A stretch of 64,000 nucleotides of DNA from Geosiphon pyriformis uo1 (lineage: Eukaryota; Fungi; Glomeromycota), in contig JAAOMT010000577.1 in NCBI GenBank assembly GCA_016748015.1, forward strand, positions 62,001-126,000. Reading direction: 5' to 3'. The notes beneath the pieces are model-generated. The model was not told the DNA's origin. It worked only from the letters and a program-made list of their open reading frames with translations, and made no database searches. The first letter of the stretch is position 1, and each line of letters opens with the position of its first letter. The position numbers and the translations under genes were made by a program. Below are positions 19,307-59,605 of this stretch, piece after piece.

Positions 19307-20810
19307 CCGACTATCACCAATGTTAGCAGATGGATTGTAATATATCAATAGACAATGCGTTATTACTAGTTCCTGCATGGTCACTATAGGACATACCTTT
19401 ATCAAACAATTTCCGGAGGAAGATCCTCGAGCGCCATTTTCATCTCTGCTTATCACAATCCCGATTCTGGATGTTGCCACATTGACAAGTCTTGGATGTG
19501 TAAAGTTCGCTCTGGATAACAACGTGGATCCCTAATTCCTCGGCCTTGGTTATCACACGTTGTCGAAAGTGATAATGCGCCTAACAAAGCATCTTTCTTG
19601 TATTCCGATTCATAATATCCGTTAACTCAGAGTAATGAAAATAGTATCAAGTTCGTGAGTGAAAAATGCGACAAAATTTCTGTCTGCAAGTGTAAGATCT
19701 ATTTATGCATCCACCAGTCCCCTTTTCTAATCTTCCGGCTTTTGTTTTGAGGTAATCAAGTTATTTTTCTTTGAGCAAAGGCCATCCATAAATTTGCAGA
19801 GGCGAACAATACGATTAGTGTCAAGAGCGCCTATTTTGCCTACATCTTTTGCTGGGTAAATGGAGTGCAAATGCCAGGATCTATGGAGACTGCATGAACA
19901 GACCCATTCGCTTGGGTTTCGTGGAACTGTTTTTGCGTCTCGTATACTCAAGCAAACTTTCGCTCATTAGTTTTGCGATAGTAAGTGAGCTTGCCATCAC
20001 TGTAATCTTGTATGGATTGAGCCAATTGTTATTTTTACGATTTTTCTCGAAGTAGAAAGGCCATAGTACACGTTTAATCTTAAAAATAAAGAATAAAAAA
20101 TTGACATGAATAATTAAAAAAAACCAAAAACGTAAAAAATATATTTTCTTTACCTTGTGTCGATGTGCATGTGCATATATTGCTGGAATGTGAGTGTAAG
20201 ATACATAGAAGCGATTCTAGGTTAACTCCTCAAAATTCTGAGCACGAATTGTTATGGTGTAACGCAGTTCCTTATGAGATTGAAAAGAAAGATGATGTGT
20301 TGAAGCACCTTGTTGTCGCCATGCATTACGTTTAAAAACTTTCTTTCGCTTGATCAACCACTTCGTCTGTAATGTTGGCAGGAGCTGAGCTTAAACGAAC
20401 TCTTAAGAGCATGCCAAGACGGATGATGGTTCTGCGAGATTTTCTTTCACCCCAGATACCGAAAAAGATGAAAGTCATAGGTTTTAACCATCCTTTTCCC
20501 ATGATACCATCTTATTTCATAATAATGCGACCCTTTTTGCTTCATCTCATCACAGTATTAAAGGCAAATCTCACCAAGCCATCCATCGCTTCAATAGCTG
20601 CTTCTGAGGGTGGTTGGGGTACCTCTTGACTAGTAACATCGGACTAAAAGTTGTTTTTATCGTTCAAAATCCTCTTTTTGCTTTGCACTAAAGACATGGG
20701 CGTAGAGGTAACCTTTCTTGGTAGCGAAGGTGGTGATATTAGCATTTTGAAAAGTTAGCTCAGGTAAGAGGAAAAAGGTGGGCATTTATTTTCGCGATTT
20801 TGAACTTGAT
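19307..20810 (-). mobile_element. IS607-like element, copy 1: degenerate serine recombinase (TnpA) plus Fanzor2/TnpB pseudogene
   Basis: 20730-20645: KKGYLYAHVFSAKQKEDFER*KQLL (decayed YARVSSxKQxxDLERQ). Then LVKRYPNHPQKQLLKRWM/GLVRFAFN (TnpB N-terminal motif), AVSIDPGICTPFT (RuvC-I, ~19865-19895), MLC*AHYHFRQRVITKAEELGIHVVIQSELYTSKTCQCGNIQ, GIVISRDENGARG (RuvC-III). Multiple stops and deletions. Confidence 0.9.
20079..20153 (-). other. Probable spliceosomal intron inside the Fanzor2 ORF of copy 1 (75 nt)
   Basis: GTAAAG...T-rich...TTTTTAAG between codons ...HAHRHK and IKRVLWPFYFEKK; homologous segment at 45539-45599 in copy 3. Confidence 0.7.
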
Positions 20811-21456
20811 AAGCATCATTTGCACATTATAACTTACAAATGAAACAAACTATAAAATTGTTCAGGATGATCGTACGTTTCAAATTGTCCTAATACAATG
20901 AATTTTTTCTTTAGTTATATATAGATCTTAAATAAATATATTCCCTAAAAAAAATTATCATGAAAAGTTTCTCGTGAAGGTGTTAGCACGATCTGCATTA
21001 AAATGAACTGGTATTTTTCAGATAGACACAGATCTGGACGCCAGAGTGAAAAAGGGCTAGATCCCCTGTGCTTAGAAAATTCTTTTAAATGAACGAGATC
21101 AATCACCAAAACTATATCGCCATTGTTATATTATTAAAAACTTATTCTGTGCACATCAAAGGGGAATCAATGTATAATTTAACTCAATAATCAACGCAAT
21201 TCACTTGTTACTTAATAGCGCTACTTTCTTTTTTCAAACCTTCGCTGGTCAGCTGTACATTTTCGACGAGTGACAAGGGATGCATGCATAGTTACATTGT
21301 GTTTCAGCGGCATGATTCATTAGCTTCATTTAAAGGATAAAATCTCGGAGAATAGATCGCTTCTTTGTTTAATAGCCGTGGTATCACTTCCCTCATGCAC
21401 AATAATATTATACAGCAGTCAATCAAAGAATACTAAATTTAAGAAGATACATTGAA

Positions 21457-22947
21457 ATGTCTTCATCAACATATGAGACTCAAGCGAACGCTGACATTTT
21501 GAGTGAAGAAATGTTGAATAGTTTATTTGCTGAAAGGCTTTGTATTGACGGTTTAACTTCTATGCGCAACTTACAACCAAGTGATGAAATACTTTTAATT
21601 GAAGAGAGTAATACGGGACATATTTCAAATTGTCAAACTCTTTCTAATAAGCTTGAGAAAAACGAATCAGAAAATTGCGATGAAGATTCTGAGCTGAGTC
21701 TTCTAAAACCCTTTTCAATAAAAGAATTAGTCGAGTCCCCGAGACTTGAAATAAAACGGATCGAGTTGAAGTCTCAAGTCATTCGGATAATCCCGCAACC
21801 CTTGCCGCAAAGTGAACCTGAATCAATGGTCGACAAATCGATCAAATTATTTTCGGAATATCTTGCAAAGGCAATCTACTTGGACGCCATGAAACGTGAA
21901 ATCAATAATTTTCTTGTCAACAACAATCAAAATCCGCAGGAATTTGTACAATTACTTTGTAGAGATTTTCGATCGAAATCCTTATGTTTACGTGGTTTTT
22001 GTCTTGAATATGGAATTGGTGGGTACGCTGATCTAATAGGAGCATTCGATACATACAAAAAATCAGCAGAGCTAGGGGACACTTACGGCCAAAACTTTTT
22101 GGGACGTTGTTATAGAGATGGAATCGGGACACGTAAGAATCAAGAAACTTCTTTTTACTGGTATCAAAAATCAGCTGAAGGCAATAATTCAACTGGTGCT
22201 TACAACTTTGCCGATTGCTTCAAGTATGCTCGAGGAACCGTCAGAGATGATAAAAAAGCATTTGAATGGTATAAAAAATCAGCAGAGGCTGGAAATGCAA
22301 CTGGACAATATGATTATGGACATTGTTTCGAGAATGGAAAAGGGACCCCGAAAGATGACTGCAAAGCATTACAATGGTATGAGAAAAGCGCTGAAGGCGG
22401 AAATACATCAGCACAATGTGCGCTTGGACACTATTTGAGAAAGGGGATTGGAACTGTAGCAAATCCCGAAAAGGCTTTTTATTGGTTTAAAAAATCTGCT
22501 TTTGCTGGTTATGCCAGAGCACAAAGTAACCTTGGTAGGTTGTAGAATGAGTTTGATTACTTTTTTTGAATTTTTAAATTGATCTTTTCAATGTTTTAAG
22601 GATATTGCTATGAAAATGGGATTGGCACAAAACCAGATATCGAAAAGGCATTTTCTTGGTATCAAAAATCAGCCAAAAGCAATGATATTCAGGGATCATG
22701 TTACCTCGGTTACTGTTATCATAGCGCCATCGGCACAAAAAAAGACAGGCAAAAAACATTTTATTGGTATAGTCGGGCAGCTGTAAATTGTGATTCGTTT
22801 GCTCAATGCAAACTCGGTGGTTGTTATCATGAAGGACATGGTACTTTACCGGATATTCACGAAGCTATCAAATGGTATCGTAAAGCTCGTGATCATAATT
22901 ACAGTAGTGCTGCAGGAAGGCTCCTTTCATTATTCTTGAAGGAGTAA
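21457..22947 (+). CDS. Sel1-like repeat protein (2 exons, intron ~22535-22600; ~8 repeats)
   Basis: ORF continues across GTAGGT...TTTAAG into GYCYENGIGTKPDIEKAFSWYQKSA...DIHEAIKWYRKA...LFLKE* (TAA 22945-22947). Confidence 0.93.
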
Positions 22948-23469: not shown

Positions 23470-23640
23470 AATGAACACAGTAGCTTTCGGTCCATTTTGT
23501 ATACACCCACCCGAGGTTTATATTTTCACATATGACCATTTTTAGCTGCTTCCTCAAGCCAAAAAACAATCATAGCAAAACCTGTAACATCTCGAAAGAA
23601 TCGTCCCAAGCCTATTTTTCACTAGTTCTTGGGTCGCAGG
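23470..23640 (-). pseudogene. Short Sel1-like remnant
   Basis: Minus strand gives LGRFFRDVTG, FWLEEAAKNGH, NLGGCIQNG across frameshifts. Confidence 0.4.
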
Positions 23641-28407: not shown

Positions 28408-29082
28408 ATGAACTTGCTAGAATTAGCCGAAGCTTTCTATTCTGAAGAACAGCCCGGCAAATCAGACCAAAATCTTATCGAAACATGTAACCGTTGGGTA
28501 GTTAAGAATAGGATTCCTTATGAACAAGTATTCTCAGAGCTCCTAGCCGCGGTTTTGAAATACGCGGAATATAGTTGTCTGGTTGGTTTTTTTTACCATC
28601 GTGGTCTTGGCACTCAAAAAGATCTACCAGCCGCGTTCAGTTGGTACAAGAAAGCAGCAGAAGCCGGTGACGAATTTGCACAGTATCAACTTGCTTATTG
28701 TTATCGAAAAGCACGAGGAACCCCGCGTGATTACAATTTGAGTTTATATTGGCTGAAAAAATCGGCTGAATCTGGATATGTCAATTCTCAAAGTTTACTT
28801 GGTAATGTATATTTACGAGGAGCATGGGGTATTCGAAGGGATAAGCGAAAATCATTTCTTTGGAATAAATTGGCTGCTGCTGCTGGGAATCAAGAGGCGA
28901 GAGATATGTTGGGACATTTTTACTTGGATGGACAAGGAACAGATATGGATCTTCATCAGGCATTAAGGTGGTATTCAAAAATGAATTCACCGCTGATTAT
29001 TCAGAGTGATTTTACGTTCACTTCGAATTCTCGATTGCAAAGTTTGTATTTAACAGGGCTTATCCGTTTTTACCGATCTTGA
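28408..29082 (+). CDS. Sel1-like repeat protein (224 aa)
   Basis: VGFFYHRGLGT, AQYQLAYCY, SQSLLGNVYLRG, LGHFYLDGQGTDMDLHQALRWY. Confidence 0.93.
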   Translation: MNLLELAEAFYSEEQPGKSDQNLIETCNRWVVKNRIPYEQVFSELLAAVLKYAEYSCLVGFFYHRGLGTQKDLPAAFSWYKKAAEAGDEFAQYQLAYCYRKARGTPRDYNLSLYWLKKSAESGYVNSQSLLGNVYLRGAWGIRRDKRKSFLWNKLAAAAGNQEARDMLGHFYLDGQGTDMDLHQALRWYSKMNSPLIIQSDFTFTSNSRLQSLYLTGLIRFYRS

Positions 29083-29612: not shown

Positions 29613-29643
29613 TTATTGCCAGCGCGAATCATTATCACTGCCG

Positions 29644-29678
<35 letters not shown>

Positions 29679-32131: not shown

Positions 32132-32234
32132 CCTTATTTTCAAGTTAGTAGAAAATATAGACTATTTAAGCCCAAGCAACTAGAATTGTTTTATCAATTA
32201 TCAAACTTGTGAAATTAGTAAGCCGATAACATAA

Positions 32235-33820
32235 GATAATGATATCCTGGCATGATTTTACAAAATTGCAACAATCTGCGCAATGGTCTCAAAAATTGTG
32301 GTCACCCAACGCGATAGGCTTTTGCCAATTTGCCTTCGACCTCTTCTGATATATCCTTTTTCTCCATTCTGTAAAACTCGTGGTTCTCTTCGACGATGCG
32401 ACCTCTGACAAGCATGAGCTCTCACAAGACATTTTTACCATGAACACGACGAGATTTGCTTATAATACTGTCAACTGGAGTCGACATCACCGCTTTTATA
32501 CTAAAAATCTACCTATCAGTCTATCATAACAGGCTTGGATAAGCCTCAATCCATCAAGGATAAACTTGAGCTTTAAGCGCATGTTCGGGTAGATAAAGAT
32601 GCTAATAAGCACGAAGACGAGAAACTCTGAAAAGCTGCAGTATGAGGCGAGTGCAAGTTCATGTGAATTGTTTTGTCTCTCGGAATGTTGCTTCGGGTAT
32701 GCACAGCAAAGCACCCACGAATATAATCGATGAAGCCTTTACTGTTAGGGAAGAAATGATTAAGTATAATGCAAGATCTATTAGCTCACTCTATCGTTTT
32801 GATCTTGAAAAAGATTTGTGTCAAACGATGATAACTCGTTCACAGAATTTTTCGAAAACCACATGGAGCCCTTTCTATGTCACTTATCTCCATAATCCGT
32901 TTATTCTTATTAAACGTCTTTATAAGCCTACCACCACTTTGGATAATGACAAGCGTGTTTTAGGGCCTCTTCATTTCGAAAAAAAGGCATAATAATAGGT
33001 GGCTCGTTCCTTCTAAGATAATGTTGGATGATAAGCTCACTTACTATTGCTAAATAAACGAATGGAAGTTTGTCTGGGTATACGAGATGCAAAACAGCTC
33101 CGCGAAACCAAGAGGATGGCTCTGTCCATGCAGTCTCTATTGATCCTGGACTCCATGCACCTTTTACATCGTACTCTCACACAAAAGGCATAGCAAGATT
33201 GGCGAAGAAGTTATTGGATGTATATTTCGCATTTGCAAAGTATTTGGATGATCAGCAAAAAGAATAAGTTATTAGAATCCTCAATAAAATGGCCCGGCCC
33301 CTCGATAGACGATTTTTCGGATGCGGCGAAAAGTTTACGTCTACCAGGTGAAATTCACTAGAAATCAGTTAGATTCTTTACCCGTGAGCTCGATACCACT
33401 GTCATTCCTCCTTCTGAAGTGTCGGACATGGTGAGTCGCAAGACAAGAAAGATTACACGAAAAACTTTCTGATAAATACTTTGTTATGCGCATTATTGCT
33501 TTCGAAAACGCCTGATCAGCAAGGCCGAGGAATTAGAGGTCCATGTTACTACCCAGAACGAATCTTAAATCCAAGACTTTAGTCTATGTGGCAAACATCC
33601 AAAGAATCAGAAGGTCTAAAGTGCGCAACTGCCGGGATTGTGATAGATAGAGATGAAAATGGCGCTTGGGGGACCTTCCTCCAGGGATTGCTTGATGGAG
33701 CCTTGGTCTACAGTGACCATGCAAGAAACAATATGTTTCGCGTAGTAATGTTTAATATTGCCTATTATTAATGTGTTACAATCCATCCGGTTAATCTTTA
33801 CTAAATTCTTTGTGATCTGA
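32235..33820 (+). mobile_element. IS607-like element, copy 2: degenerate TnpA serine recombinase plus Fanzor2/TnpB pseudogene
   Basis: 32283-32435: MVSKIVVTQRDRL/CQFAFDLF*YILFLHSVKLVVLFDDATSDKHELSQDIF (DRLxRF recombinase signature). Then RFAYNTV, AVSIDPGLHAPFTSYS (RuvC-I ~33130-33175), FFTRELDTTVIPPSEVSDMVSRKTRKITRKT, CYAHYCFRKRLISKAEEL...QNES, GIVIDRDENGAWGTFLQGLLDG (RuvC-III ~33635-33700). Confidence 0.92.
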
Positions 33821-33896: not shown

Positions 33897-34100
33897 TACA
33901 GTTTATCAATTCTCGTCCCATAAATTGCAAACCTAAGCTTTTTTTTTGCAAAATCAAAAATTCTGGTTCCAATAAAGAAAATCAATGACAAGCTTTATTC
34001 CATTTATGGAATTATATGAGCTGATAAATATACCTCTTTCAACAGTTTATGATAATATCAAAAAGCTCAAGAAAAATGGGAATATTGCAAAAAAATGATT
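33897..34100 (+). mobile_element. Tc1/mariner 5' relic (transposase HTH fragment)
   Basis: TA-CAGT at 33897 (Tc1-like terminus) followed by QALFHLWN and INIPLSTVYDNIKKLKKNGNI; no partner inverted repeat found. Confidence 0.5.
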
Positions 34101-42421: not shown

Positions 42422-43705
42422 TTACCTATAGCTAAAGAGCCCGAACAATACGTGTATATTTTTCTCCTGTCCACCCTTGATACTTCTTCTGCAATATTTT
42501 ATGGCTTGATGTGAATCTTTGGGGACACCATTGCCCCGCAAGTAATGCATAGCCAATTCACTTTGTCCAATGTAGTGTTCTCCATCAGCACTTTTTTGAT
42601 ACCAGTAGACCGCTTTTTTATAGTCAATCTTGGTTCCGATCCCTATCAAAATATAAATCGATTCTCTCGAAATATTTATCATTATTGTTCTTTCAATCTG
42701 AGGATTTAACAAGAGCTTACCTCGAAAATAGCAAGAGGCAAGAACACATTGACCATGGGGATCTCCGGAATTCGCAGCTTTGAGATGCCAACCAAATCCT
42801 ATTTTACTATCCTCCTGAACTCCAAGACCATTTCGATAACAAAAACCAACCCGATTTTGAGCTGGCTCATACCCATTTTCTGCTGACTTTATATACCAAT
42901 TGAAAGCTTCCGCTTTATCCTCAGCTACTCCACAACCGTGATTATAGCAGAATCCGATTGCAAACTGTGCCATTGCATTCTCTGCTGTCATTGCAGATTT
43001 CATATACCATTGGTAAACCAAATCAGGCCTCCGCAATGTTCCAATGGCATTCTCATAACAATAGGCCAAGTTATATTGGCCAATTGTAAATCCATTCATT
43101 GCTGATTTTTCAGCCCAATAAAATGCTTTTATATCATCATTTTTCGTCCCTGTTGCATCACGATAACAGCGACATAAGAAATTCTGCGCATATTTGTCAT
43201 CACATTCGGCTGATTGGTGATAAATTTCAACTGCTTTTGATTGATTAATTGTTGTCCCAATTCCAAATTCATGACAAAATCCTAGCAATGGCAAATGTCG
43301 GGTACCAGTTTTTGCGCGAAGAGCATTAAACAGTTCTACAGCTTCAATATCCTTCTTGCATATATTTTTGTAAATATATCTTGGTAATTTTTTGAAATAC
43401 ATTCCATTTTCCAATGCATCAATAAAGATTTCATTGGCAATTGCTACGATACGATCTGACCTTGACATTTCGCCATCATCGTTTGAAGGGATCGAAATTG
43501 TGGGTGAAGTTTCATTTTGCGAGCGTGAACATGGATCTACCTTTGGGCTTTTCGACAGGAGAGTGATATCCTTTACAGATTCAGGCAGAGGAGATTTACG
43601 GGATTCATCTATGGTTATTGAATTTAAAAAATTCAATAATTCTTCCTGATCGTTTGAAATTCTTAAGCTTGGGTGTGGATTAAATTTGGCATCAGAGAGC
43701 TCCAT
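42422..43705 (-). CDS. Sel1-like repeat protein (~7 repeats), with a probable 78-nt in-frame intron at 42643-42720
   Basis: LGFCHEFGIGT, GQYNLAYCYENAIGT, AQFAIGFCYNHGCGV, AQNRVGFCYRNGLGV; removing GTAAG...ATAG restores CYFRGIGT. Confidence 0.93.
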   Translation of the reverse strand: MELSDAKFNPHPSLRISNDQEELLNFLNSITIDESRKSPLPESVKDITLLSKSPKVDPCSRSQNETSPTISIPSNDDGEMSRSDRIVAIANEIFIDALENGMYFKKLPRYIYKNICKKDIEAVELFNALRAKTGTRHLPLLGFCHEFGIGTTINQSKAVEIYHQSAECDDKYAQNFLCRCYRDATGTKNDDIKAFYWAEKSAMNGFTIGQYNLAYCYENAIGTLRRPDLVYQWYMKSAMTAENAMAQFAIGFCYNHGCGVAEDKAEAFNWYIKSAENGYEPAQNRVGFCYRNGLGVQEDSKIGFGWHLKAANSGDPHGQCVLASCYFRGKLLLNPQIERTIMINISRESIYILIGIGTKIDYKKAVYWYQKSADGEHYIGQSELAMHYLRGNGVPKDSHQAIKYCRRSIKGGQEKNIHVLFGLFSYR

Positions 43706-44619
43706 GCTTTTCAAAGATTTTCGGTTATCAAAAAATCAAGCAAAAATAGAAAATGCAAATATGTAAAAAGCGCTCAAGCATGATTAAAATGTGATGCTCA
43801 TTGAAAATAATAATTAAAAAGATAGAAGTATGTACAACTCCTAATTTGGTAAGCGTCGCACGTGACCTTACAGTTTAGCGCCAAATCAATATTCATAATT
43901 CATAAACCGAAGTTTCTCATATAACGTTAAAGTTTTTCCCTATCCATTAATCTCGCTGATGTTCCAACTCTCAGGCAACTTTTTGGGAAATTAACATACT
44001 ATTTCGGAAATAAAAGTATAAATATTTTTTAATTTCCACCAAATGGATATTTATGAATTAGAATGTGAACAGCTAAATACAAAAGAGAGCATTATAACAA
44101 TTAAAAAGGAGAATATAAAACTCATCATAATGATGAGATCCAAATAATAATAATTTAATTAAAGTTATTCAAATAATCATAATAAAATAATGTTTAATTG
44201 TTACATTTTGTCTTTAAATTACATAGTTGCAATTTACATATAGTTATTTGAAATAGAGAAAAGTTTTATGAAGTTACTTAAATTTGAATTTTATTAATAG
44301 AATATTATCGTGAATTTTTTTTAATAATTATACATAAATGTTGTGATCTTTACATCTTAAAAAAAAATGAGTGGATTTATTTATCATATTTTCTTATTAG
44401 TCATTAATCTCTATCCATTGCTCTCTGTTAGCTTGGTCCTTTGAACCATAATAACACAAAAACAAGCCTACACCATATATCCTTTATCTGTTATTTCCCT
44501 TTTAAAAGTGTAAGTAAAATAAGCTCTAGTGACATTGAATGAATTTTTTTTATAAATATATAAACGATTTTATTTTAAAAAAGACACTCTTACCATTTCT
44601 ACTTCAAAGCAGTCTCATT

Positions 44620-44795
44620 CATAAAACAAGAAGTTGTGTTCTTCACTCGCGGGTTTGACGCAACTGTCATCCCATTATTTAAGGTGTCAAAAATGATAAC
44701 TTGTAAGGCCAGAAAAATCACGCAAAAGGCACTCCAGAAAATGCTTTACTGTATTATCATTTCCGCTAACATTTGATTTTCAAGGCCGAGGAGTA
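44620..44795 (+). mobile_element. Isolated Fanzor2 RuvC-II-region fragment
   Basis: VVFFTRGFDATVIPLFKVSKMITCKARKITQKALQKML...SKAEE, homologous to 33370-33535 and 46020-46140. Confidence 0.8.
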
Positions 44796-44929
44796 AGAAA
44801 ATTATTTAAAAAGTGCAAACCTGATTAGTACTTATTCTCTTAGAAAATTAATCTCGAAATAAAAAAAATTTGAAAAGCAAATATTTTTGTTTTCTTTAAA
44901 CCGAAAATACGACAATATACTAAAATACC

Positions 44930-46265
44930 TGTCTTCAACCTCCATTTTGCAAAACTCGTGGTTCTCTTCAACGATGCGACTCTGACGAGCTCAAACTCTT
45001 CCTGGATATTTTTGTCAACAAAGTCTTCATCTGCCCCTACTGAGGAGAGCGGAGGAACAAAAAAGCGCAAGAGAAGGGTAACAGCAGCCCGTGGTAAACG
45101 CCAGACATCCTAAACTGCATGTTACTAGTCAAGATGTATCTCAACCACCCTCAGAAGCAGTTATTGAAACGATAGATGGTTTGGTGAGATGGAGCAAAAA
45201 GAGTCGCATTATTATGAAACAAGATGGTATCACGAAAAAAAGGATAGTTAAAACCAATAACGTTTCAACAAAAACGTCATCTTTTCAATAATGTTTCAGG
45301 AATCTGCGGTGAGGAAAAATTTCGCAGAGCTATCTCCATCTTGGCATGCATTAGTTGCGCGAAAGGAAGTTTTTAAACCTAATGCATACGACAACAAGGT
45401 TTTCAACACATCATCTTTCTTTTCAATCTCATAAGGCATTAAACCATAATGATTCGTGCTCGGAGTTAACCTGGAATTGCTTCTATGTATCTTACACTTA
45501 CATTCCCAGCAATATATGCATATGCACATCGACACAAGGTAAAGATGATAAATTTTTTACCTTTTTGGTTTTTTAATTATTCATATCTTTATTTTTATGA
45601 ATAAACATGTAATATGACCTCTCCATTTCGAGAAAAAAAACAATTGGCTCAATCCATACAAAATAAAATGTGATGGCAAGCTCACTTACTATCGCAAAAC
45701 TAATGAATAAAAGTTTGCCTGAGTATAGGAGACGCAAAAACATCTCGGCAAAACCCGCACAGATGGCTCTATTCATAGAGTCTCCATAGATCCTGGCATC
45801 CGCACACCATTACCCAGGAAAAGATGTAGGCAAAATAGGCTCCTGTCGTATCAGTCGTATCGTTCGCCTCTGCAAATTTATGGATGACCTTTGTTCAAAG
45901 AAAGATAAATTAAATACCTCCTCAAAACATAAGAAAGCTAAAACCGGAATATTTGAAAAGGGGATTGGGGGGATGCATCAAAAGATCTTGCACTTGCAGA
46001 CATAAATACACAGAAAGGCCGTCGCATTTTTCACTCACGGGTTTGATGCTATTGTCATTTCTCCCTTTGAGGCATTTGACATGGTGAGTCGCAAGACAAG
46101 AAAGATTACGCGAAAACGTCTGATCACCAAGGCCGAGGAACTAGGGGCTCGTGTTATTATCCAGAACGAAACTTACGCATTCAAAAACTTGTAGTCTATG
46201 TCGTAACATCCAAAGAATCAGAGGGTCCGAAGTGTACAACTGCCGGATTTGTAGAATTGTGAGAT
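44930..46265 (+). mobile_element. IS607-like element, copy 3: TnpA C-terminus plus Fanzor2/TnpB pseudogene, truncated at both ends
   Basis: KLVVLFNDAT / SILQNSWFSSTMR, GTKKRKRR, VKMYLNHPQKQLLKR, RVSIDPGIRTP (RuvC-I ~45775-45810), RIVRLCKFMDDLCSKKD, HRKAVAFFTHGFDAIVISPFEAFDMVSRKTRKITRK, KAEELGARVIIQNETY, VYNCRICRIV; ends before the RDEN motif. Confidence 0.92.
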
Positions 46266-48236
46266 TTTAGCATATCCAAAATCATAAAGCGCAGATGTTT
46301 AAAAAGAATTCATGAGTCATTAGGCCGCACAAAAATATTGGGCTGACTTTGGTGATCAGAAGCTGGCATCCTTTTGGTTGGTTGCTAAAGATTCCCATTT
46401 TTTTAAAGTCAATTTTTAAAGCAATAGCTTTTGATTTTTTTGCAAAATGTTGTTAAAATCAACTAATAAATGTTTTATTTCTTGATAGCAAAAACGCTTC
46501 CTGCCCACGATGTTACCAAGATTCAGTTCAAAAATATCAATTTCAAGTTATATTCTAAATTTATAACAATGTTCCAGATCTGCAAAATTTGTTTGAACCA
46601 ATAGAATTTCACAGCTTTCCTTTGATCATATGTGTAACCCCCTACTCAGGAGAAATCTTTTTTTATTTTACTAGAAATTGCAATACCAATTTTCGATTTT
46701 GAATTAGAGAAAACCTTGGTAGCTTAATAATTTTTAGATCTGCATAACTACTATTTGATGAGTATGATGACTTTGAATCTTTTCAAACGTCACAAAAAGA
46801 TCTGGCCAAAAAGTATTGTTTTACTGGATAAGGTACTTATGGCAAGAAATTCTTTTCCTAAAGTATCATAACTTGGAAATTGAAAACAATAATAAAACTT
46901 TTAATTAAACTTTGTAGTTCTTCAATATTCTTTTTTCGAAAGACGAATTTTATAAACCAAATTCTGTCTGATTCAGCCCAATAACAATGTTTCTAGATCT
47001 CTAATATCTCAATCATAAAGAACTGCATTTAATTTCCCTCTATAAACAGTTTATGACTATTGTCAAATAAATAATTATCAATCACAATAGAAAATTGAAA
47101 GAATTAATTATATATTTTCATTTAATGTGATAAAAATCAAAAATTTGAACCCTTTGTTGATGTAAAGGCTGAGATTTCTGGGAGAATAATTTAATTTTCA
47201 AAACATGTCCAAGTAAACAAGTATTTAAAAATTTTGTTTTTTAATTACTAATTCAAGGTCACCAACAATCCTGCCAATAGAAATCAACCTGGCCGATTTC
47301 TGATATTGAAATCTATAACTTTACCACTTCGATTCATCGAACGTTTTGTGTACATTTTAATACTTGCAGATTAACACCTGAAACAAGAAATAAACATTTT
47401 TAACTTTCGTTAAAAAAAAATACAAAAACCTTTTTTATACGTTTCGATTTTTGACCCCCTGTTGAAAAAACCAATGAAAAACAATCTCCAATGCTTTGTG
47501 ATTTACACAATGGAATGGCGTTAACATGGAATAATTAATAGCGTTTTTTTTTCGCTGATCATTTAATATCAAACATTTCTAACTCCGTTTGTATTTGCAT
47601 GTATATATATATTAAAATAGTTTGTTGATTAATAATGATATATTAACCAATAAACATCAAGCCACTTATACTGTTTATCCTTTAGTTTTAACCGTTTCCT
47701 CCCTTTTTTCTCTCCCTTTCTTAAAACGGTTATCTTGTTATCTTTTTTCTACCCCTTTCATTTTATCGTAATTTGCCAACTATCAAATATTGAATTAACT
47801 AAGAAAAGGTGACAATATGATAAAGGCAATTACAAAGTTATGAGATTTAATGCCCGCAATAAAGCCTGGAAGCGAAAATTAGTTATAAGATAATTGGGTG
47901 TACAACATGGACCACGCTAGATCACACTACTCTGGGAGGTTAATCCAGGATTGGCCTTTAATAATGCAGTGCTACCTTTTCTTTACATCACCTTTTGAGC
48001 AGCAATTTCTGCATTGCCCCAAATAATGGCATACTAAGGGTAGTATTTATTTTTGGGAGTTATTTGGGTTAGGAAAGGATTAAATTGAGACGGCAGGAAC
48101 GTCAATTGAAAAAAAAAATTTTTTGCTTTTTTCTTGAATTAAAACCTCCATTCTTTGGAATAATTTCCTTGATATAATATTATTTATTTTAACATTTTTG
48201 AAACATCTTGAAGAAAACTTTCTAAAACAAACGAAG

Positions 48237-49043
48237 ATGACAACAACATCGTCACCAACCATTGCCAGAACGAAAAAAGTTTCTGAATATGGATATCGAG
48301 AGGTTGAATATAAAGAAATAAGCTTTATCAATCGGATAAAACAATTATTTAAAAAAAATCAAAGTGGAAAAGCAAATATCAATAGCATACAAATAACTCC
48401 GGAATCAACAGCAATAAAGGAACTGTTAAACTCACTATCTAATATTATTGACCCAGGGGCAGAAGACCAACATTTACTAGCAGGCATAGAAACTTGGTTT
48501 TCTTCGCAACCGCAAACACGCAAAAAAATTTTCCAAGAACTAAGAAAAACTGCAAAAATTCACCATGAATACAATTTCCTCTTAGCATTCTTTTACCAAC
48601 AGGGAATCGGTACACGAGTACAAACCAAGAAAACATTCAAATATTATAAGCGGGCTGCTGAAAAAGATGATTATTTCGGCCAAAATCAACTAGGATGGTG
48701 TTTTCAAAACGGTATTGGGACACGATGGGATTATGATAAAGCGTTTCAATGGTACTTGTCTTCAGCGAAAGGAGGGGATTTCTCAGGGATGTGTAACCTG
48801 GCTTATTGTTATACTGATGGGACTGGTACGACAGTAGATGAAAAAGAAGCCTTTTATTGGTTTTTAAAATCGGCTGAGTCTGGCATCGCAGTATCGCAAA
48901 ATGCCGTTGCGGGATGTTTCCAAAATGGAAAAGGAACTACAAAGGACATTCACAAAGCTTTATATTGGTATCGAAGGTCATTAAAGCATGGGTATCATTT
49001 TTGGCATTTAGGCTTAAGGAAATTGATGACTAAAGGTTATTAA
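48237..49043 (+). CDS. Sel1-like repeat protein
   Basis: IIDPGAEDQHL module, LAFFYQQGIGT, GQNQLGWCFQNGIGT, GMCNLAYCY, DIHKALYWY; first ATG at 48237. Confidence 0.93.
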   Translation: MTTTSSPTIARTKKVSEYGYREVEYKEISFINRIKQLFKKNQSGKANINSIQITPESTAIKELLNSLSNIIDPGAEDQHLLAGIETWFSSQPQTRKKIFQELRKTAKIHHEYNFLLAFFYQQGIGTRVQTKKTFKYYKRAAEKDDYFGQNQLGWCFQNGIGTRWDYDKAFQWYLSSAKGGDFSGMCNLAYCYTDGTGTTVDEKEAFYWFLKSAESGIAVSQNAVAGCFQNGKGTTKDIHKALYWYRRSLKHGYHFWHLGLRKLMTKGY

Positions 49044-51545
49044 CATTGAGAAATAGCGGTTGTAGGGAGAATTTGTAAAATAATTATAAAGAGATTTTAG
49101 CGATCGAATACTTTTGTTGTAAAAATAATTGACTAAAACGAAAAATTTTCAATAAATTCAACTTCCAATCCTCGAAAAAACATTATCTGATAATCTAGCC
49201 AAAAAAATGATTGCAAATTTTATTTAGAATTAAATGAATTTTTTTTTAACCAGCGAATCCAGATGTATTTTAATCTTATTTTAAGCGTCATTTTTTTCTA
49301 TGAGCTACAGATGTCTGCGTTATTTTATTGTTTTGAAAGTGTATTAGTATAAGCCTGGGCGATGATTAATGAAAAATCAAAAACTGATGGATTAATTGTT
49401 GAACGAGCTTTGCGATGTTTAAAATAAACGAATGCCAAGCCTATCAAAAATAAATTCATTCAAGGTTTGGCTGATGTTGATTCTCACCATGGAGTTGGAA
49501 ATTTTCTAGATTCAAAAAATGGAGAAGCAGCAAAAATAGTCTAGGTGGTGTTATACAAATAATTGGAACCTCGATTAAAATCTTATTAAAGCTGAATTTC
49601 GAAATTGATCAACTACTCTTATCAGATTTCAAATTTAAAGGCTTTAAATAGCCTTTGTTTTAAGATTTGGCACCCATCGCTGACACCTGAATTCAAAAGA
49701 CACTTTTTAATAGCTTTAAGATTTGATTTTTTGACATTCCACCCTTATATGAAGCAAAGATTTAATTTTTCTGAAATTGATTTGAAGCGATAATTACCTT
49801 CATAAAGAAAGTATCAAAAGATTTGCTATAAATAGGATATATAATTTGATAGTTGGTTTTCCAGAGGCATTTAAATCGCGTATATGGCTCTGGGTTTTTT
49901 ATTTTCTTACTACTTAATAGAAAAATTGAAAACTTTAATAAATACCATATTCATATCCTCATTAGAGAAATATAATATTAATAAGCTTTGATCTCATATT
50001 TGGAATTATTTTCCAATAGTTAGATAAATTAAAAAGTTGCTACTAAATTTATCAATCTGGATTCGAAAAAAAACAAAAGATCATTAGTCAATAATTGAAC
50101 TTGAAATTAAATTGTGTTTTATTTCTTGGTTTTAAATTAAAATAGTTAGTAAATATCTAAATTTGCATACGATATGATTCATTAATTCTCTTACCAGTAA
50201 ACGTTGAACGGCAAAAAGATTTCAACAACACTTTAACGCGATTCCTTATTAGATTAACAAAAGAAAAAAGAAATTAAACATTGATTATTTGGGCATTTGG
50301 TTATTCAAACAAAAATCAAACAGCAGGTTATTCCAATTTTACAATTGTTTTTATATGAGCCCAATAATTACCTCGCATCAGAGTACATAAATTCATAAAA
50401 TAGGGAGGTTGGCGTTTTGATTTTTTAGTTTATTCAAGTATCAGTTTCTAAATTTAACGCTTTGTATATACCTGATGATTAAAATATAAAATTTTTAATA
50501 GATACACCTTATCTTAAAAAGTGTGATACAAGATATTTTAAAAGTTTCAGTATTAAAGAATTTTTAAATAATCTTAAATAATATAGTTTGTTTATTATCT
50601 TTGCCAGAAAATTTTTTTCCTAAATTTGAAGATTATATTTTGGCTGAAATTTTATCTTATTACCCAAAGCTTAAAGTAATTAAATTCCTATGCTGTCTGT
50701 AAAGCCAATTGAAATTTGAATTATAAAATGGATATGACATAACATTTGGCAAGTAAGCATATCATTTAGATTTTTGCTAATTTAAAAAGTCCAAGTAAAA
50801 TGGATCTTTATTGTTTTTTGAGTAATTCAAAATTTCTTTAAATATTCAGAACTTACTTTTTGATAAATTGAATTATAAACATATATCTCATTTTTGGGTA
50901 TTCCCGTTTTCTCAAATCAAATGAAATCTGTCTAGGTATCTAGTTTAGCTCTTCCATCTGGTTAAAGTGGTAATATTTGAAAAAGGAATCACAAATTGAA
51001 AAATTCTCTATCACAATTTAGGATTTGACTTTTTCTTGAAACAGTATTCAAGTCTTAATATTGAAGGTAAAACAAAACAAAGCAATTTGAAATTTTGACA
51101 ATACGAGGATAATATTTTTGCAAGTAAATTATTTTTAACATAAAAACAATACGAGTAAAACATTTATCTGTCAAATTTGTAATATTCTGTTCTAACTCCT
51201 TCACTGAACTAGTGTAATTAAGAGGATATTTTGTTTCATAAAAACCCGCAGGCAATGCATGTAAATTCATTTTTATCGAAAAATCGGCAAAGCAGCTCAT
51301 TTATTCAGGCTTCATTACTTTCCATATACATCCAGAATTGCGGGTGGCGCATGATAACAATTTCCAGTTGAGGAGTATTTTAACTAAAAATCTCAATTAG
51401 CGAAAAGCTGGATTACTAGAAAATTACAAAGTCAAAGACAAAAGTTTTATTCTATTATCTATAAAATTGATGATGATACTAAAGATTGGAATTTAAGAAA
51501 TCTTTTAAATATATAACTCCTTTTTTCCATAGTTGGATCTCAAAA

Positions 51546-52739
51546 ATGACATTCTTCAGACATTGCTTTCACTTTGACTGTTCTGTTTCATTTAAAATTA
51601 GAGTCAAACGTTCTAAAAATACTAAAATTCAAAAAAACAATTTAAAAAAATCTCAAGTAGCACCCAAAATAACACCAAAATTAACGAGAGAAATGCAATT
51701 CAGTGTATATTCTGGTGCCAAAAAAGTATTCCTAAAGATAAAAAATAGGATTGTTCCAGAATTTCATTTGACGATACCCTTGAATCACATATCAGCCCGA
51801 AATACTTGTTTTGCTCCTTACACATCTGCAAATAAAATTCCATTCACTGGTATATCGGAATTACAGAAAAAAATTTTAACGGACCTAATGGTGTACTTCA
51901 CAGACCTCACCTATATTACTGGAGAAGATGAAGACATAGCGAAACAAATAAAAACATGGATAATAAAACAACATGAAACCCACGAGAATATTTTCAATTT
52001 ATTACATTCACAAAGAACAATCGCACCTTGTGCATCCCTACTTGGAATCTTTCATAAATTTGGAATTGGGACTATACCAGATATAAACGCAGCTTTTGAA
52101 GCTTACCAAATTGCAGCAGATGGAGGTAGTTATGCTGGTCAATCACAAGTAGGATATTGTTATTACTATGGCCTTAGTGTTCAACAAAATGACGAGAAAT
52201 GCCATGAATATTTTCAAAAGTCTGCCGCTGGAGGGGATATTCATGGCAAGATCAATTACGCATTTTGCTTTGCCGATGGTGTCGGGCGATCAGTTGATAA
52301 AGAAATGGCATTTAAAATGTATCGAGAGTTGGCTGATATTAATTCACCTCTCGTTTTAAGACCTTTAGCCGATTTTTATCGAAATGGGTGGTGCGTTGGA
52401 ATAGATGAGAACTATGCCTTTGAACTTTACAAAAGATCAGCAGAGGGTGGAAATTGTTCTTCAAAAAATGATCTTGCTTTATCTTATATTGCTGGTAGAG
52501 GATGTGTACCAGATTTTTGCAAGGCTTATTATTGGTTTCGTATGGCAACGGAAAATGGATTTGAATCTGGGACATTTAATCTTGGATATTGCTATGAGAA
52601 AGGGTTTGGAGTGGTAAAAGACTTTCATGAAGCTATTCGAATGTATATCAGCAGTTTCAAAACTGTTCAACAAAGAAAATCGCGTGAAAATTCTTTTACA
52701 GCTTTGAGAACTATATTTCGGATAGAACAGAGAGCATGA
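51546..52739 (+). CDS. Sel1-like repeat protein with basic N-terminal extension
   Basis: LGIFHKFGIGT, GQSQVGYCYYYG, LADFYRNGWCV, FNLGYCYEKGFGV; close paralogue of the 60392 gene. Confidence 0.92.
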   Translation: MTFFRHCFHFDCSVSFKIRVKRSKNTKIQKNNLKKSQVAPKITPKLTREMQFSVYSGAKKVFLKIKNRIVPEFHLTIPLNHISARNTCFAPYTSANKIPFTGISELQKKILTDLMVYFTDLTYITGEDEDIAKQIKTWIIKQHETHENIFNLLHSQRTIAPCASLLGIFHKFGIGTIPDINAAFEAYQIAADGGSYAGQSQVGYCYYYGLSVQQNDEKCHEYFQKSAAGGDIHGKINYAFCFADGVGRSVDKEMAFKMYRELADINSPLVLRPLADFYRNGWCVGIDENYAFELYKRSAEGGNCSSKNDLALSYIAGRGCVPDFCKAYYWFRMATENGFESGTFNLGYCYEKGFGVVKDFHEAIRMYISSFKTVQQRKSRENSFTALRTIFRIEQRA

Positions 52740-53276: not shown

Positions 53277-54596
53277 TTAAAATCGTAAAAGATAGTAAGC
53301 ACCATAATATTGAACGCGATAATGCTCACCACCAAAAAAAGCATTCAGGCCATCTAAAGCACTGAGATTTCCTAATTTCTCTGCTTTTCGATACAATTTA
53401 ACGGCCTCGTGCAAATCGGCTTGTGTCCCACATCCATGATGATGACAATAAGCAACATTATACAGACCACTCGAATTTCCTCCATTAGCCGATTTTTTAT
53501 ACCAATAAAATCCCAAAAGAGGATTCCGAGAAATAGCAACCCCGTACTGATAGCAATATCCAACTTCATTTTGTGCATAGTAATTCCCACCATCAGCCGC
53601 TTTCTTATACCAATCAAATGATAACTGAGTATTTATCTTACAACCAATTCCATTTCGAAGGCAAAATCCCAAATTCGATTCACCATCATGATTTCCCTGG
53701 TTGGCTGATATTTCATACCAATAAAAAGCTTTTGCTTCATCTTTCTCAACCCCTTTGCCCGATTGGTAGAGTCTTCCAAGTTGAATTTGTGATTCTGCAT
53801 TTCTCTTCAAGGCGGCCTTATGAAACCATTCAAAGGCTTTTTGATCATCTTTAGGCACACCGATTCCTTTCAGGTAACTATATCCCACGTTAAACATTCC
53901 ATACTCGTTTTCGTGTTCTGCTGATTGCATATACCAATAAAAAGCCTTTACATAATCTTGTTTTATTCCAACTTGATCTCGATAACATGTGCCAAGATTA
54001 CACGCACCTCCACTATCCCCTCCTTCAGCCGATTTCAAATACGATTGAAAAGCTTTTGTTTCGTCTTTTTTTGTTCCTATTCCATTTTCATAGCAATATC
54101 CCAACCACCCTAGACCACCAGCATACCCTGCATCAGCCGATTTCTTGAACCAATAGAATGCCAACTCATAATCTTGTTCAGTGCCCATTGCGTCGTGATA
54201 ACACCATCCAACTTGGTTAGCTGCCAATGAATCTTGCTGCGCATCCGCGGCAATATGATACCAGAAAAACATTTCCCGTTTGTTGATTTCGGTGCCGACT
54301 CCCCAACAGTATAAAAATGCTAGGAATGACGTATAACCAGGTCGAAATCGTTTGCTATATGTTTTTTCAAAAATTTGTTCGGCTTTATAATGCTGTGAAT
54401 TTATACGAGCTTTAATTTCCTTAATTATAGTTTCATCGTCATCATAATGTTTATTTCCTGCGTTAAAGATGTTTAGTAAGTCGTCTACCGCCTCTGTTAC
54501 GATTTGATCTTGCGTCTTGACATCGAGAACATGTTCAAATTCCTCCATCTCAACTTCCTGTATCGTCATTTCTGGGAATTTCTCTTGAGAATTCAT
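53277..54596 (-). CDS. Sel1-like repeat protein (~9 repeats)
   Basis: Regular 36-aa units, e.g. GLGWLGYCYENGIGTKKDETKAFQSYLKSAEGG and SQIQLGRLYQSGKGVEKDEAKAFYWYEISANQG. Confidence 0.95.
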   Translation of the reverse strand: MNSQEKFPEMTIQEVEMEEFEHVLDVKTQDQIVTEAVDDLLNIFNAGNKHYDDDETIIKEIKARINSQHYKAEQIFEKTYSKRFRPGYTSFLAFLYCWGVGTEINKREMFFWYHIAADAQQDSLAANQVGWCYHDAMGTEQDYELAFYWFKKSADAGYAGGLGWLGYCYENGIGTKKDETKAFQSYLKSAEGGDSGGACNLGTCYRDQVGIKQDYVKAFYWYMQSAEHENEYGMFNVGYSYLKGIGVPKDDQKAFEWFHKAALKRNAESQIQLGRLYQSGKGVEKDEAKAFYWYEISANQGNHDGESNLGFCLRNGIGCKINTQLSFDWYKKAADGGNYYAQNEVGYCYQYGVAISRNPLLGFYWYKKSANGGNSSGLYNVAYCHHHGCGTQADLHEAVKLYRKAEKLGNLSALDGLNAFFGGEHYRVQYYGAYYLLRF

Positions 54597-55202
54597 TCTT
54601 AATTTTGAGACCGTTTGCGTCTTCAACTTTACTTCCTCAATTGTTTGTCTTCTGGCTATGAAAATTTAAATTTTGATCAAAAAGAGGCGAAATTAATGAA
54701 AAATAAAAAAATGCAAAAAGTTTTTTGACAAGGATTGAATATTATCAAAGAATACGCCAATTTTGGTTAAGTATAACGCATTAAATTAAAGTGATACATG
54801 AAATTCGAACACAGCTCTACAAATTAACAATCCCTGCGCCTCAATGAAATTGTGTGTCATAATGTTTTGGGTTCACAAATGAGATTTTTATACTTATTGA
54901 TTATAGGATGTAAATGTAAATGTAAACATTGAGGCATAGCAATTCACCCATTGGCTGTAACAAGTTAGCAATTTTTCCATTTGAGGAAATTCTTTTTCCG
55001 AATTGAGTGAAAATCACCATGTATTAACTATTAACAATTACAAAAATTGTATCCCTGATCGAATTTGACTACAGCCAGGAGTTTGAAAATCTGATTCGAA
55101 ATACAAATGATTGAAGGTTTCTAATCTTAAATATTAATTCTATTTTACGCAGAAATTTTCTAAAAAAAGGACCGTATCAGGCTGATGTGAAAATGGAGGC
55201 TA

Positions 55203-56205: not shown

Positions 56206-58049
56206 TATGATGAGATTTTGGTTAGTCGAAAAATTATTGGAAACTTTTAATAAATTGAAAAATGACGAAACTTATTGAGGGGAAGGGATATGAGTACTAG
56301 ATTTCTTTCAACTTATAAGCACCTTCGTCTGCACGTGAAAGGCCACGTTGAAAAAAACTCTGATTGATTTTTCTTTGTATTCTGACCCGTATCTCTTAAA
56401 AAATCATATATCTTATGCTTCATCTCGGGGGATTCGATTATTCTGGTAACAACGAAACTCTATTGTCTGTTTGGAAACAAATATAAGACGGTTTTTGAAC
56501 ATTTAGAACAAATTAAATTCCAAGTTTGTTCGTGATCGGCCTGCATCGAGGTCCAAGCAAATTGCTGTGATCTGTGACACAGCGTAAGGAGATCAGGCCA
56601 TCCATTGAAGGTTCGCGATGATTGGAGCATAGATGAGTCGCGAACTGCAAGAAGTTTGCATTATCAGATAAATTGAGAAATGGCTATTCAATTTCGGTTT
56701 GCCAAAGTTGGCAGAATCCGACGTGATGTTCCTGATAACCATATCAAAAAGAAAAAAGTGTGGTTTTTAGATTTGGCTATCGTGAATGGTGAAATTTTCA
56801 GTGAAAGCAAACAATCTCAAGTATGAACAAAAGGTATCTTCAGCTGCCAAGGTATTAGTCCATGTTTGTGATTGTATTATGGGTTAGCAAAAGTGTGAAT
56901 TTCAATTTACAATAAGATCTTTAAATTTCAAAGGACAACTAGAAAATATGGCTGTGTTGCCAGTATTAGAATCTGTCAATTTTTTCGCTAACAATGTGAC
57001 TCCAATAATAAGAATCCCAAAGTCACATTTGCATATAGTTTTCTAGAATTTTTTTTGGATCGGGTTACTAAAAATATCTGATTTCTAAACAGAAAACATT
57101 TGTGGAATCTTTGAAAAATTTAATCATATTTTACAATTAGCAAATAAGTTATTCTTTTTTCAGCCAAACTTTAATTAAATTTAAGTTTCATTGTAAAACC
57201 TTATTTTAAGTCAAGTCATATTATTGGACGTTTATTAAAAATTTTCCTAGAAAAATTACCCCTTATATGCCTTTGGTTAGATACCAAAAAACCATGCAAC
57301 TATTTTAGTTTCTAAAAAAAATTTTTGATGGGGCTTAGATTTTGACGTTAAGTCAATTATTGATAGTGAGTTTTTGCCATGCATTTCGTAAAAAGACAAT
57401 TATTTTAACACAAGAATAATTTTTTAGCTTGGTGGGTTCCCATTTTTCTTTTGATCGAACAATTTGCAATTAAAAGAACGGTTACGTCAGAATAACGCCA
57501 TAATCAAATAACCTTTGTAAATAGAGAATAGTGAGATAATAAAACAAATGAAAGTATTTGAACATATGGAATATTTGTTTTTTTTTGGTAGAAAAAATTA
57601 GAATGATTTCTCTGAAATTTTTCTGAATTTCTCCCAGAGGCTTTTATCTTCGGAACATCAATACACGAAGGACATAAACTGCGTGCAAGAATCATTGAAA
57701 GTAAACATCAGTTTTAAATCGAACGGTTTTTATATAGTGAAATTGAGCCCAAAATATCCAGACCTCAATTTTCTTGAGGATCAGCTTAAATTCTCTAATT
57801 CGGCTGATTGTTACAATATAAGAAAATAGAACGCCTGAGCTGCCTTTGGATTTTGATAAGTTTAAATGACCGTATCAACATTGCAATCTTGAACCATACT
57901 ATTCCTGAGGTATCACTTTTCTATTAGATTCTGCATCCTGGATTTCAAAAGAGGCTCTTGTTTTCAAATCCTATATTCAGCAAATCTTTTAGATAATAAT
58001 TTGTAGTCCACACTAAGCACTAGCTAAGACTACTATTTCCTACATGAGC

Positions 58050-59605
58050 TCAAGTAATGTCCCAAGAGTATCTCCTGAGCGTTATTTTCATCTCTGAGCA
58101 TTATTCTAGCCCATAATTCCGAGTTGTACACTTTAATGCTTTTTGTTATCACACCAGCCACAAGTTTTGGATGTATAAGCCATATTTTGGATGACAACAA
58201 GGGCTCCTAACTCAGGGCGTTGTCTATCAGATGTTGACGGGAAACGGTAATGCGTCCATAACATTTTGCGGAGTCTTTCTTGTCTTATGATTCATTATGT
58301 CTAACATTTCAAATGAAATGAAGAAGATTGTGTCAAACTCACGCGTGAAGAATATGACCACCTTTCTGTGGATTTTACTCTGCAGACGCACAATCCCTCG
58401 TAGTATGTGCGACTGTTTTGTTGAGTCGACAGGAGCTGCTTTGAAGTAGAGAAAGCCAGTCTGAAAGGAGGTTATCCATATATTTTTGTGCAGGCAAACA
58501 ATTCATCCGATGCACTAAAGCCTATCTTATCCACACCTTCAGATAAAAACTCTCAACTGAAACGTGTGCGAAACACCAGAATAGAGACTGGATAGATGGA
58601 GTTTTCCGCCCGGGTTTTGCGGACTTGTTATTGTGTCTCATAGACCAAGGAATGTTGTTTTGTCGAGAATAGGCAAGTTTACCGTCAGATTTAATCTTGC
58701 GCGACCGCCTATTCTTTTTACAAAAAAGGTAATTAAAAATTTAGTCATAGAAATTTTTTTCAAGAAACTAAAATTTTTCCTTGTCTCGACATGCATAAGC
58801 ATGCAACCTCAAGAATATGCCCAGACGGATAACCAAAAAATAATTTAAAAAGAGGACATTTTTGTTGAACTGTTATAGAATTGGCCATTTCTTTGCTATG
58901 ATATCATTTTGCTTCTTTAACAATATAATTCTTTGTGTTCCATCCACTACAGTATTAAAGGCAAATCTTGCGAAGTCCACCCGCCGCCTCAAGAGGTGCT
59001 TCTGGAACACCTTGAGCACCAATGTGTGGCTGAGAGCGTCATCGCTTTTTACATCATGCAATTTTGTTTGTTCTAATTTTCTCTTTTGTAGTTAGCTGCT
59101 TGTCGTCCTTTCATTCTGTAGATGAAGACAGTGTTGATGACAAAATATCTGCTTTCTTCGAGCAAGAGGATGCGACGTTGATACAATCTATTCAAAAAAT
59201 ACACATTACTTCGTGAACCATTAAGACCAGCATATTAATTATACATAAAGTTACATCTATATGCTTAGAAAAAATTCCGTTTTCTTGGCTAGCTTCTTAG
59301 AAAGCTTGTGCTCATCGAAGGTTTTATGGTCGAAGAGAACCACGAGTTTTGCAGAAGAGAGGGAGAAGATGTTGAGCAGTTATAACTTCTAAGATAATCG
59401 CGCGACTTGCTCCTTCCCATAAGGCCTCAAGTCTTGTTGGAAGTTGACACCCCGAGTGGATATTGCTAAGCCGCTTTTGTCACCAGAGATTCTCTTTTTG
59501 CTTGGCCACAGAGTCACAGAAGTAACCTTTCTTAATAGCGGGGGCAGTGATAATGGCTGGATTTGGAAGTTGGAGAAAAAGGTGATATCTATTGTCACGA
59601 TTTAA
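58050..59605 (-). mobile_element. IS607-like element, copy 4 (most diverged): TnpA plus Fanzor2/TnpB pseudogene
   Basis: AIKKGYFCDSVAKQKENL, SNIHSG/VNF, ILEVITAQ, KLVVLFDH, INTVFIYRMKGRQAANYKR (TnpA). Then LVLKVFQKHLLRRRVDFARFAFNTV, HRKVVIFFTREFDTIF, PELGALVVIQNMAYTSKTCGW, LRDENNAQEIL. Confidence 0.88.

Follow-up and report, generated by a model that had tools for sequence, protein, structure and literature searches.

Introduction

Fanzor2 nucleases are known to occur together with TnpA, the serine recombinase of IS607-type transposons (PMC3627910, PMC10530073, PMC10711439, PMC13565253). Yoon et al. described a Fanzor fingerprint that combines the RuvC-I motif DPG with a glutamate (Ealt) before the first CxxC, and a matching dinucleotide at both element junctions is a prediction of IS607 recombination (both PMC10711439). 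For NlovFz2, the Fanzor2 of Naegleria lovaniensis, the target-adjacent motif (TAM) has been measured as CCG (PMC10432273). The disordered N-terminal regions of these proteins, which bear a nuclear localization signal (NLS), are likewise known and have been explained as acquired once capture by eukaryotes had taken place (PMC10530073, PMC10432273). In the open-access literature, we found no paper linking Fanzor to Glomeromycota, nor one on an overlap, nesting or overprinting of tnpA and Fanzor, an arrangement that may nevertheless have been described before.

We analyzed a stretch of 64,000 nucleotides from the genome of the glomeromycotan fungus Geosiphon pyriformis (contig JAAOMT010000577.1, positions 62,001 to 126,000, forward strand; hereafter the window). 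Five of its segments are, we are confident, fossilized copies of a eukaryotic DNA transposon of the IS607 type ('IS607EU'). The double-frame imprint in these copies led us to intact relatives in which tnpA lies inside the open reading frame (ORF) of the nuclease. It seems probable that this layout, with tnpA nested in an extended TnpB/Fanzor ORF and Fanzor in the +1 frame relative to tnpA, holds for the whole clade formed by cyanobacterial 'pro-Fanzor' and Fanzor2 IS607 elements.

Results

A sequence-only reading of the window had reported five mutually homologous, frameshifted segments carrying TnpA and Fanzor2. These are present, at coordinates accurate to within ~100 bp, and the motif strings that it had assembled occur in all-frame translations, scattered over frames and interrupted by stops. 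All five segments give matches in the same order, with frame switches, to intact external IS607 TnpA and Fanzor2 proteins, and self-BLAST finds no other repeated DNA in the window. Identity is 72.4% over 1,240 aligned columns between copy A (19.46–20.64 kb, minus strand) and copy C (45.12–46.22 kb, plus strand). In the window self-BLAST, copy B aligns with both in several blocks at 72–81%, and copy D yields at the DNA level only matches of 57–121 bp.

The assignment to TnpA and Fanzor2 was borne out by profile searches and by motifs. Sibling copies elsewhere in the genome score 80.9 bits against the IS607-specific NCBIfam model NF033518 (positions 51–184 of 187, stops read through), which is below the cut-off of 110 bits, the genes being broken; the TnpA pieces of these copies match the model in the expected order. 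This model finds 37 genomic matches, versus 3 for Pfam Resolvase. Matches to the PF07282 TNB domain and guided_TnpB were obtained for the nuclease part; Pfam searches with single short window ORFs gave no match, the pieces being too short. At many loci, TnpA relics lie 1.1–1.4 kb upstream of TNB matches on the same strand. The nucleophile motif Y-A-R-V-S-S is readable in copies A and D, and V-S-I-D-P-G, which contains the RuvC-I DPG, in copies A, B, and C, having been lost in D. Ealt, a glutamate that precedes the first CxxC by six residues, is kept in copy A and in the sibling copy L006, and D-R-D-E-N-G-A with the RuvC-III aspartate is present in copy B; in individual window copies single motifs are degraded. 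Across the alignment of relatives DPG is invariant, and 65 of 78 full-length relatives carry the fingerprint of Yoon et al. in strict form (70 of 78 in relaxed form). The best relative with a solved structure is the mimivirus TnpB-like L79 Fanzor2 (PDB 9b0l, E 3.9e-11), and the best named one is the Fanzor2 of Naegleria lovaniensis. By these best matches the family appears closer to IS607 TnpB than to Fanzor1. One sibling copy is identical to the 147-aa Geosiphon pyriformis gene model KAG9307454.1. The genome also holds a second, more divergent and broken Fanzor-like family (L001, C701:385596-386183; L003, C404:445313-446116), in which P-P-F-N-A-S-Q replaces P-P-F-E-V-S and whose top matches are to residues 393–643 of P0017, our best intact reference protein.

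Each of the long copies in the window has several frameshifts and stop codons. Copy A (19327..20846, minus strand) retains its right end at 19327, its left end at ~20846 being an estimate. Its Fanzor2 relic occupies 19424–20636; DPG lies near 19875, and the ORF at 19440–19556 includes E-x6-C. An internal deletion has removed most of its tnpA, leaving the catalytic-serine region alone (20645–20737; ATG at 20783–20785), and its protein matches cover TnpA residues 48–89 and P0017 residues 196–611. Copy B (32270..33789, plus strand) is 5'-truncated, with its 5' third gone, and ends at 33789 with ..AATCCATCCG. It comprises a TnpA C-terminal relic (32283–32448), a relic of the Fanzor N-terminal extension in the +1 frame (32272–32404) and the Fanzor core (32440–33771), with DPG at 33139–33147 and the RuvC-III motif in the ORF at 33586–33771; the matches cover TnpA 113–180 and Fanzor 91–134 and 214–647. 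An isolated Fanzor scrap from the RuvC-II region (44579..44773, plus strand) sits directly upstream of copy C, to which it is unrelated, and derives from another copy; its positions 44,624–44,746 match P0017 residues 527–567 (E 4.6e-5). Copy C itself (44914..46262, plus strand) is truncated at both ends. The 3' part of its tnpA (44931–45180), with a basic NLS-like cluster in the ORF at 44874–45110, is followed by a Fanzor relic (45110–46252, DPG near 45800) that stops after the second zinc-ribbon half, so that RuvC-III and the right end are gone; it matches TnpA 149–244 and Fanzor 192–611. Copy D (57950..59660, minus strand, both ends being estimates) is the most decayed. It shows a KKGY..KQKE motif (59483–59611), TnpA relics (59079–59415), an N-terminal Fanzor part (58900–59118) and a zinc-ribbon/RuvC part (58139–58400), with the middle of the nuclease unrecognizable; matches cover TnpA 135–196 and Fanzor 112–240 and 516–608.

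What the sequence-only reading had missed is that the 'TnpA' stretch of these copies reads in two frames and that the Geosiphon TnpA is without its DNA-binding domain. P0017 has a 190-aa N-terminal extension, and this extension matches the Geosiphon 'TnpA' region in the other frame; in window copies B and D, the matches to the N-extension lie one frame on from those to TnpA. At all ten intact long loci, the first 200–260 codons of the Fanzor ORF enclose a whole tnpA, read in the −1 frame; these loci lie on the contigs of P0017, P0166, P0175, P0012, P0016, P0111 (two copies), P0122, P0143, and P0188. The nested TnpAs are of IS607 type, 206–264 aa long, and include the helix-turn-helix (HTH) domain. 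Gene callers had given only the longer, Fanzor ORF at these loci. The three tnpA AUGs that were located have T at −3 and most Fanzor AUGs have A at −3, contexts that are compatible with leaky scanning.

The same frame relation is found in prokaryotes. Among bacterial loci (cyanobacterial, poribacterial, and other) and those in IMG/VR, every one that has a TnpA reads TnpB in the +1 frame relative to tnpA, and in most of these loci the TnpB frame is open for 93–260 codons upstream of the core. In Oscillatoria PCC 10802 and MAG115, tnpA contains stops and the long frame is still open; in Naegleria, tnpA has vanished and the N-terminus still aligns with the N-extension. In Nostoc PCC 7120, same-frame homology extends 121 codons further upstream of the 392-aa TnpB core that NCBI annotates. 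With the same frame open in bacteria, the overlap cannot be counted as a eukaryotic adaptation; the idea of a eukaryotic invention was dropped in view of the cyanobacterial loci. Two unrelated bacterial loci, L084 (~2170–2180) and L073 (~2040–2060), have an in-frame stop in tnpA while the overlapping TnpB frame is open; the two stop positions nearly agree, each lying beyond the Y-P motif downstream of the catalytic serine, and this agreement may be coincidence or recoding.

Could the +1 frame over tnpA simply be untranslated, with Fanzor/TnpB starting at the core methionine and the 'N-extension' arising as a by-product of TnpA conservation or of some other constraint? The conserved motifs of the N-extension are indeed exact +1 readings of conserved TnpA blocks, the Nostoc annotation is confined to the core, and the frame is open also in bacteria, where an NLS is unneeded. 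We nevertheless consider this explanation unlikely, given how the stops are distributed. When the TnpA protein was held fixed and synonymous codons were drawn from the Fanzor core, 5.5–11 stops were predicted in the Fanzor frame and 0 were observed (P ≤0.002 at each of five loci); this frame is free of stops over 200–260 codons in all ten of the intact loci, which are diverse and range in GC content from 25 to 50%. In contrast, the third frame always has 5–39 stops, and TnpAs of the same family outside the clade have 8–42 stops in their +1 frame. Furthermore, the long frame outlives a broken or lost tnpA in L084, L073, and Naegleria, and the NlovFz2 protein that has been expressed is described as having a disordered N-terminus of 96 aa (PMC10432273). 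Since tnpA is nested, stops are avoided non-randomly, and the cyanobacterial pro-Fanzor loci have the same frame relation, the disordered, NLS-bearing N-terminus of Fanzor2 looks, at the sequence level, like an overprint of tnpA.

In Geosiphon, the MerR-type HTH domain of TnpA was not found: no copy examined matches NF033518 positions 1–50, and only ~24 codons lie between the conserved ATG site and the catalytic-serine motif. Two Geosiphon TnpA matches, at C667:97862-98338 and C658:236342-236665, reach profile positions 3 and 14 and may carry the domain, which is present in the TnpA of all intact relatives and of a relic from Cetraspora pellucida. Lacking this domain in their TnpA, the amplified Geosiphon elements were probably not autonomous, and would probably have been mobilized in trans.

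The ends of the element could be read from alignments. In ~20 aligned copies, conservation drops abruptly after ..AATCCATC, which is followed by CG. Right ends within the window lie at 19327 (copy A) and 33789 (copy B), and a search of the window for the 24-base right-end motif, with up to 3 mismatches allowed, gave two occurrences where chance predicts 0. The left end begins with ATGAAAAG.., with CG or TG just before it and C at position −3 in seven of eight left junctions. The CG/TG dinucleotide is thus found at both junctions. Inspection of the aligned ends by eye, with no dedicated search for inverted repeats, revealed no terminal inverted repeat. Read from these junctions, the TAM of the family would be C-CG, the same as the CCG of NlovFz2.

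The last 120 nt are predicted to contain a closing helix, GAUGGA/UCCAUC, of which UCCAUC is terminal, and an inner hairpin. This helix and hairpin pair in 85.6% of cells, versus 23–56% when the partner is slid, and are also predicted for L032, an intact relative, three pairs showing compensatory changes. The prediction fits the long-range pairing described for the guide RNAs of TnpB and Fanzor2.

A search of the assembly (128.3 Mb in 792 contigs) yielded no fewer than 135 relics of the nuclease and 37 of TnpA, nearly all with stops and spread over more than 60 contigs; these counts are lower bounds, with 68–150 of 240–447 candidates scored. The earlier suggestion of a once highly active family agrees with this abundance. 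A search for the intact copy that it had envisaged was unsuccessful among the copies examined: no Fanzor ORF of at least 280 aa was found in ~50 Geosiphon loci, every ORF of that length being a flanking host gene. The copies nearest to copy B are only 76–83% identical to it. The subfamily of copy B has a star-like tree with pairwise identities of 75–85%, a Kimura two-parameter distance of 0.227, and a mild excess of CpG decay; decay from the founder, for this one subfamily, amounts to ~0.11 substitutions per site. The star-like tree together with the narrow range of identities indicates one old burst followed by neutral decay. Copies A and C belong to a second subfamily; copy A is 73–77% identical to copies on other contigs.

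The window lies in a cluster, with seven nuclease relics in ~102 kb (C771, 44–146 kb, the window and its flanks) where ~0.1–0.2 would be expected. A similar pile-up, of at least six relics, is seen on C718 at 2.08–2.25 Mb. The roughly 12–17 kb spacing of the relics on C771, and an array of Sel1-repeat paralogs in the window, might suggest segmental or tandem duplication of one insertion with its neighboring Sel1/kinase genes. We regard this as very improbable. The flanks cannot be aligned, the relics being the sole repeated DNA of the window; copy B belongs to another subfamily, the copies differ in orientation, and a Sel1 gene lies beside only one of ~50 loci elsewhere. As A resembles C no more than it resembles copies on other contigs, the cluster points to independent insertions or preferential retention rather than to duplication. 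Still less credible is that the segments stem from a giant virus that had integrated and that bore IS607/Fanzor2 copies, rather than from a transposon family that spread in the fungal genome. Giant viruses are enriched in such elements (PMC10530073), and the nearest intact relatives are in densely packed, virus-like contigs (L068, L232); against this, more than 60 contigs bear relics, each with its own sharp ends and unrelated flanks, and the other genes of the window are Sel1/kinase paralogs, a type expanded in Glomeromycota, and not viral hallmark genes. We therefore rejected an endogenous giant-virus element as an explanation for the window. Delivery of the founder element by a virus is possible. 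That the family is native to fungi is uncertain, the nearest intact relatives being in giant-virus-like and metagenome contigs.

The Sel1-repeat ORFs of the window lie at 484–1776, 12873–13505, 21457–22545, 28408–29082, 42422–43714, 48198–49043, 51486–52739, 53277–54626, and 60392–61537. The long ORFs of the window are Sel1-repeat/kinase paralogs on both strands, one with a kinase domain, and cannot be aligned with each other as DNA; the genome has ~2,362 candidate Sel1 repeats. A general link between the copies and Sel1 genes was rejected on the count of adjacent loci given above. The window is AT-rich (GC 16–41%), with blocks of very low GC (16–25%) at 9001–10000, 14001–17000, and 34001–39000 separating gene-bearing stretches.

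Several relatives deserve description. The relic from Cetraspora pellucida, also a glomeromycotan, has one frameshift, three stops, and a TnpA with the HTH domain. At this locus (L233, CAJVPW010007404.1, 3501–5117), an annotated 398-aa 'gene' is a spliced model over the frameshifted Fanzor2 relic, its 'introns' bridging the lesions. On the metagenome contig L032, which encodes P0166, the right end of a second copy (90% identity) lies tail to tail with the intact element (4105–4270, 6664–6829), and the copies flank a 562-aa gene without a Pfam match; two copies at 90% identity imply a recently active family. P0188 is 82% identical to P0017. Its 26-kb contig L232 carries one nested tnpA/Fanzor2 element and the 37-kb contig of P0111, L068, carries two. 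Both contigs are dense in small ORFs with almost no intron-type gaps, and their genes include a TFIIS zinc ribbon, OTU, ERCC4, an RNA ligase, and many small ORFs of no known kind. They resemble the DNA of giant viruses, which may plausibly have brought such elements to fungi.

Discussion

The data can be combined into a proposed element of ~2 kb, with a left end ATGAAAAG..., a short tnpA, the Fanzor2 gene, a right end ..AATCCATC, and CG, often decayed to TG, at both junctions. In Geosiphon, tnpA would encode the catalytic domain of the serine recombinase only, and the N-terminal extension of Fanzor2 would be read in the +1 frame over it. Going by the biology of IS607, TnpB, and Fanzor2, TnpA would insert the element into CG dinucleotides without target-site duplication. 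The last ~120–150 nt would form an omegaRNA scaffold, with the predicted end ..UCCAUCCG, that runs into the right flank. Fanzor2 with its omegaRNA would then cut the emptied or unoccupied site beside a C-CG TAM and so favor restoration of the element via repair. At least two subfamilies would have spread in the old burst, after which the examined copies would have decayed neutrally. In living relatives, a single transcript could give both TnpA and Fanzor, plausibly by leaky scanning past the weak tnpA AUG.

Some observations weigh against this picture. A stricter test, in which codons were permuted within the gene, gave weaker results than the codon shuffle (P 0 to 0.07), and the bacterial open frame over tnpA might not be translated. 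RNAalifold found no consensus structure in 15 right ends, taken from decayed and gap-rich copies, and an Rfam search at E up to 1 gave no match. With 68–150 of 240–447 census candidates scored, an intact copy may exist elsewhere in the genome. Lastly, leaky scanning and the TAM are inferred, as is the left end of the element in the relatives.

Taken alone, the window copies are unremarkable: dead transposons whose kind is known, from a host group for which we found no report. Their value lies first in the dozens of independent insertions, which directly display the ends, the core dinucleotide, and the probable TAM, and second in leading to P0166, P0188, and P0017, intact natural relatives that have the same right end and could be tested as nucleases with no need to reconstruct a sequence. 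If the nested arrangement is true, the N-terminal nuclear-targeting tail of Fanzor2, including that of NlovFz2, arose from tnpA and persists as a fossil after the death of tnpA. It would also explain how eukaryotes can express a bacterial element of two genes: a layout of two proteins on one message, already present in cyanobacteria, may pre-adapt the lineage, by leaky scanning, to eukaryotes and giant viruses, and would account for why this IS607 lineage alone crossed domains. Gene callers would then hide the TnpA of many 'TnpA-less' Fanzor2 loci, and surveys of called genes would under-count TnpA partners.

The nearest relatives of the window family are the Cetraspora pellucida relic (L233), P0166 (L032), and P0188 (L232), which share its architecture. 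Their right ends terminate in ..AATCCATCCG (L233 and L032) or ..ATTCATCCG (L232), and their DNA is only 65–72% identical to that of Geosiphon; L032 and L232 are intact, unlike the Geosiphon copies. Intact, too, is the viral element of mimivirus L79 (ApmFz2, 9b0l; Jiang et al. 2023, PMC10530073), in which the TnpA serine recombinase is likewise followed by Fanzor2, with an NLS in the disordered N-terminus. Gene order in the cyanobacterial pro-Fanzor IS607 elements (Yoon et al. 2023, PMC10711439) is as in the Geosiphon family, and these elements share with it the +1 relation of TnpB to tnpA, the imprint motifs, DPG/Ealt, and insertion at a dinucleotide core. They differ in being prokaryotic, in having a TnpA with HTH domain, and in being annotated as a ~390-aa core only. 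The closest named relative is NlovFz2 (Saito et al. 2023, PMC10432273), with 48% identity over the part comprising RuvC-II, zinc ribbon, and RuvC-III. It shares DPG/Ealt, its measured CCG TAM equals the C + CG at the Geosiphon left junction, and the N-extension of the clade can be aligned, in the same order, with its disordered N-terminus; its right-end sequence differs from that of Geosiphon. The Naegleria copies are intact and active, with a tnpA frame that is wholly dead, whereas the Geosiphon copies are all broken yet still show both frames.

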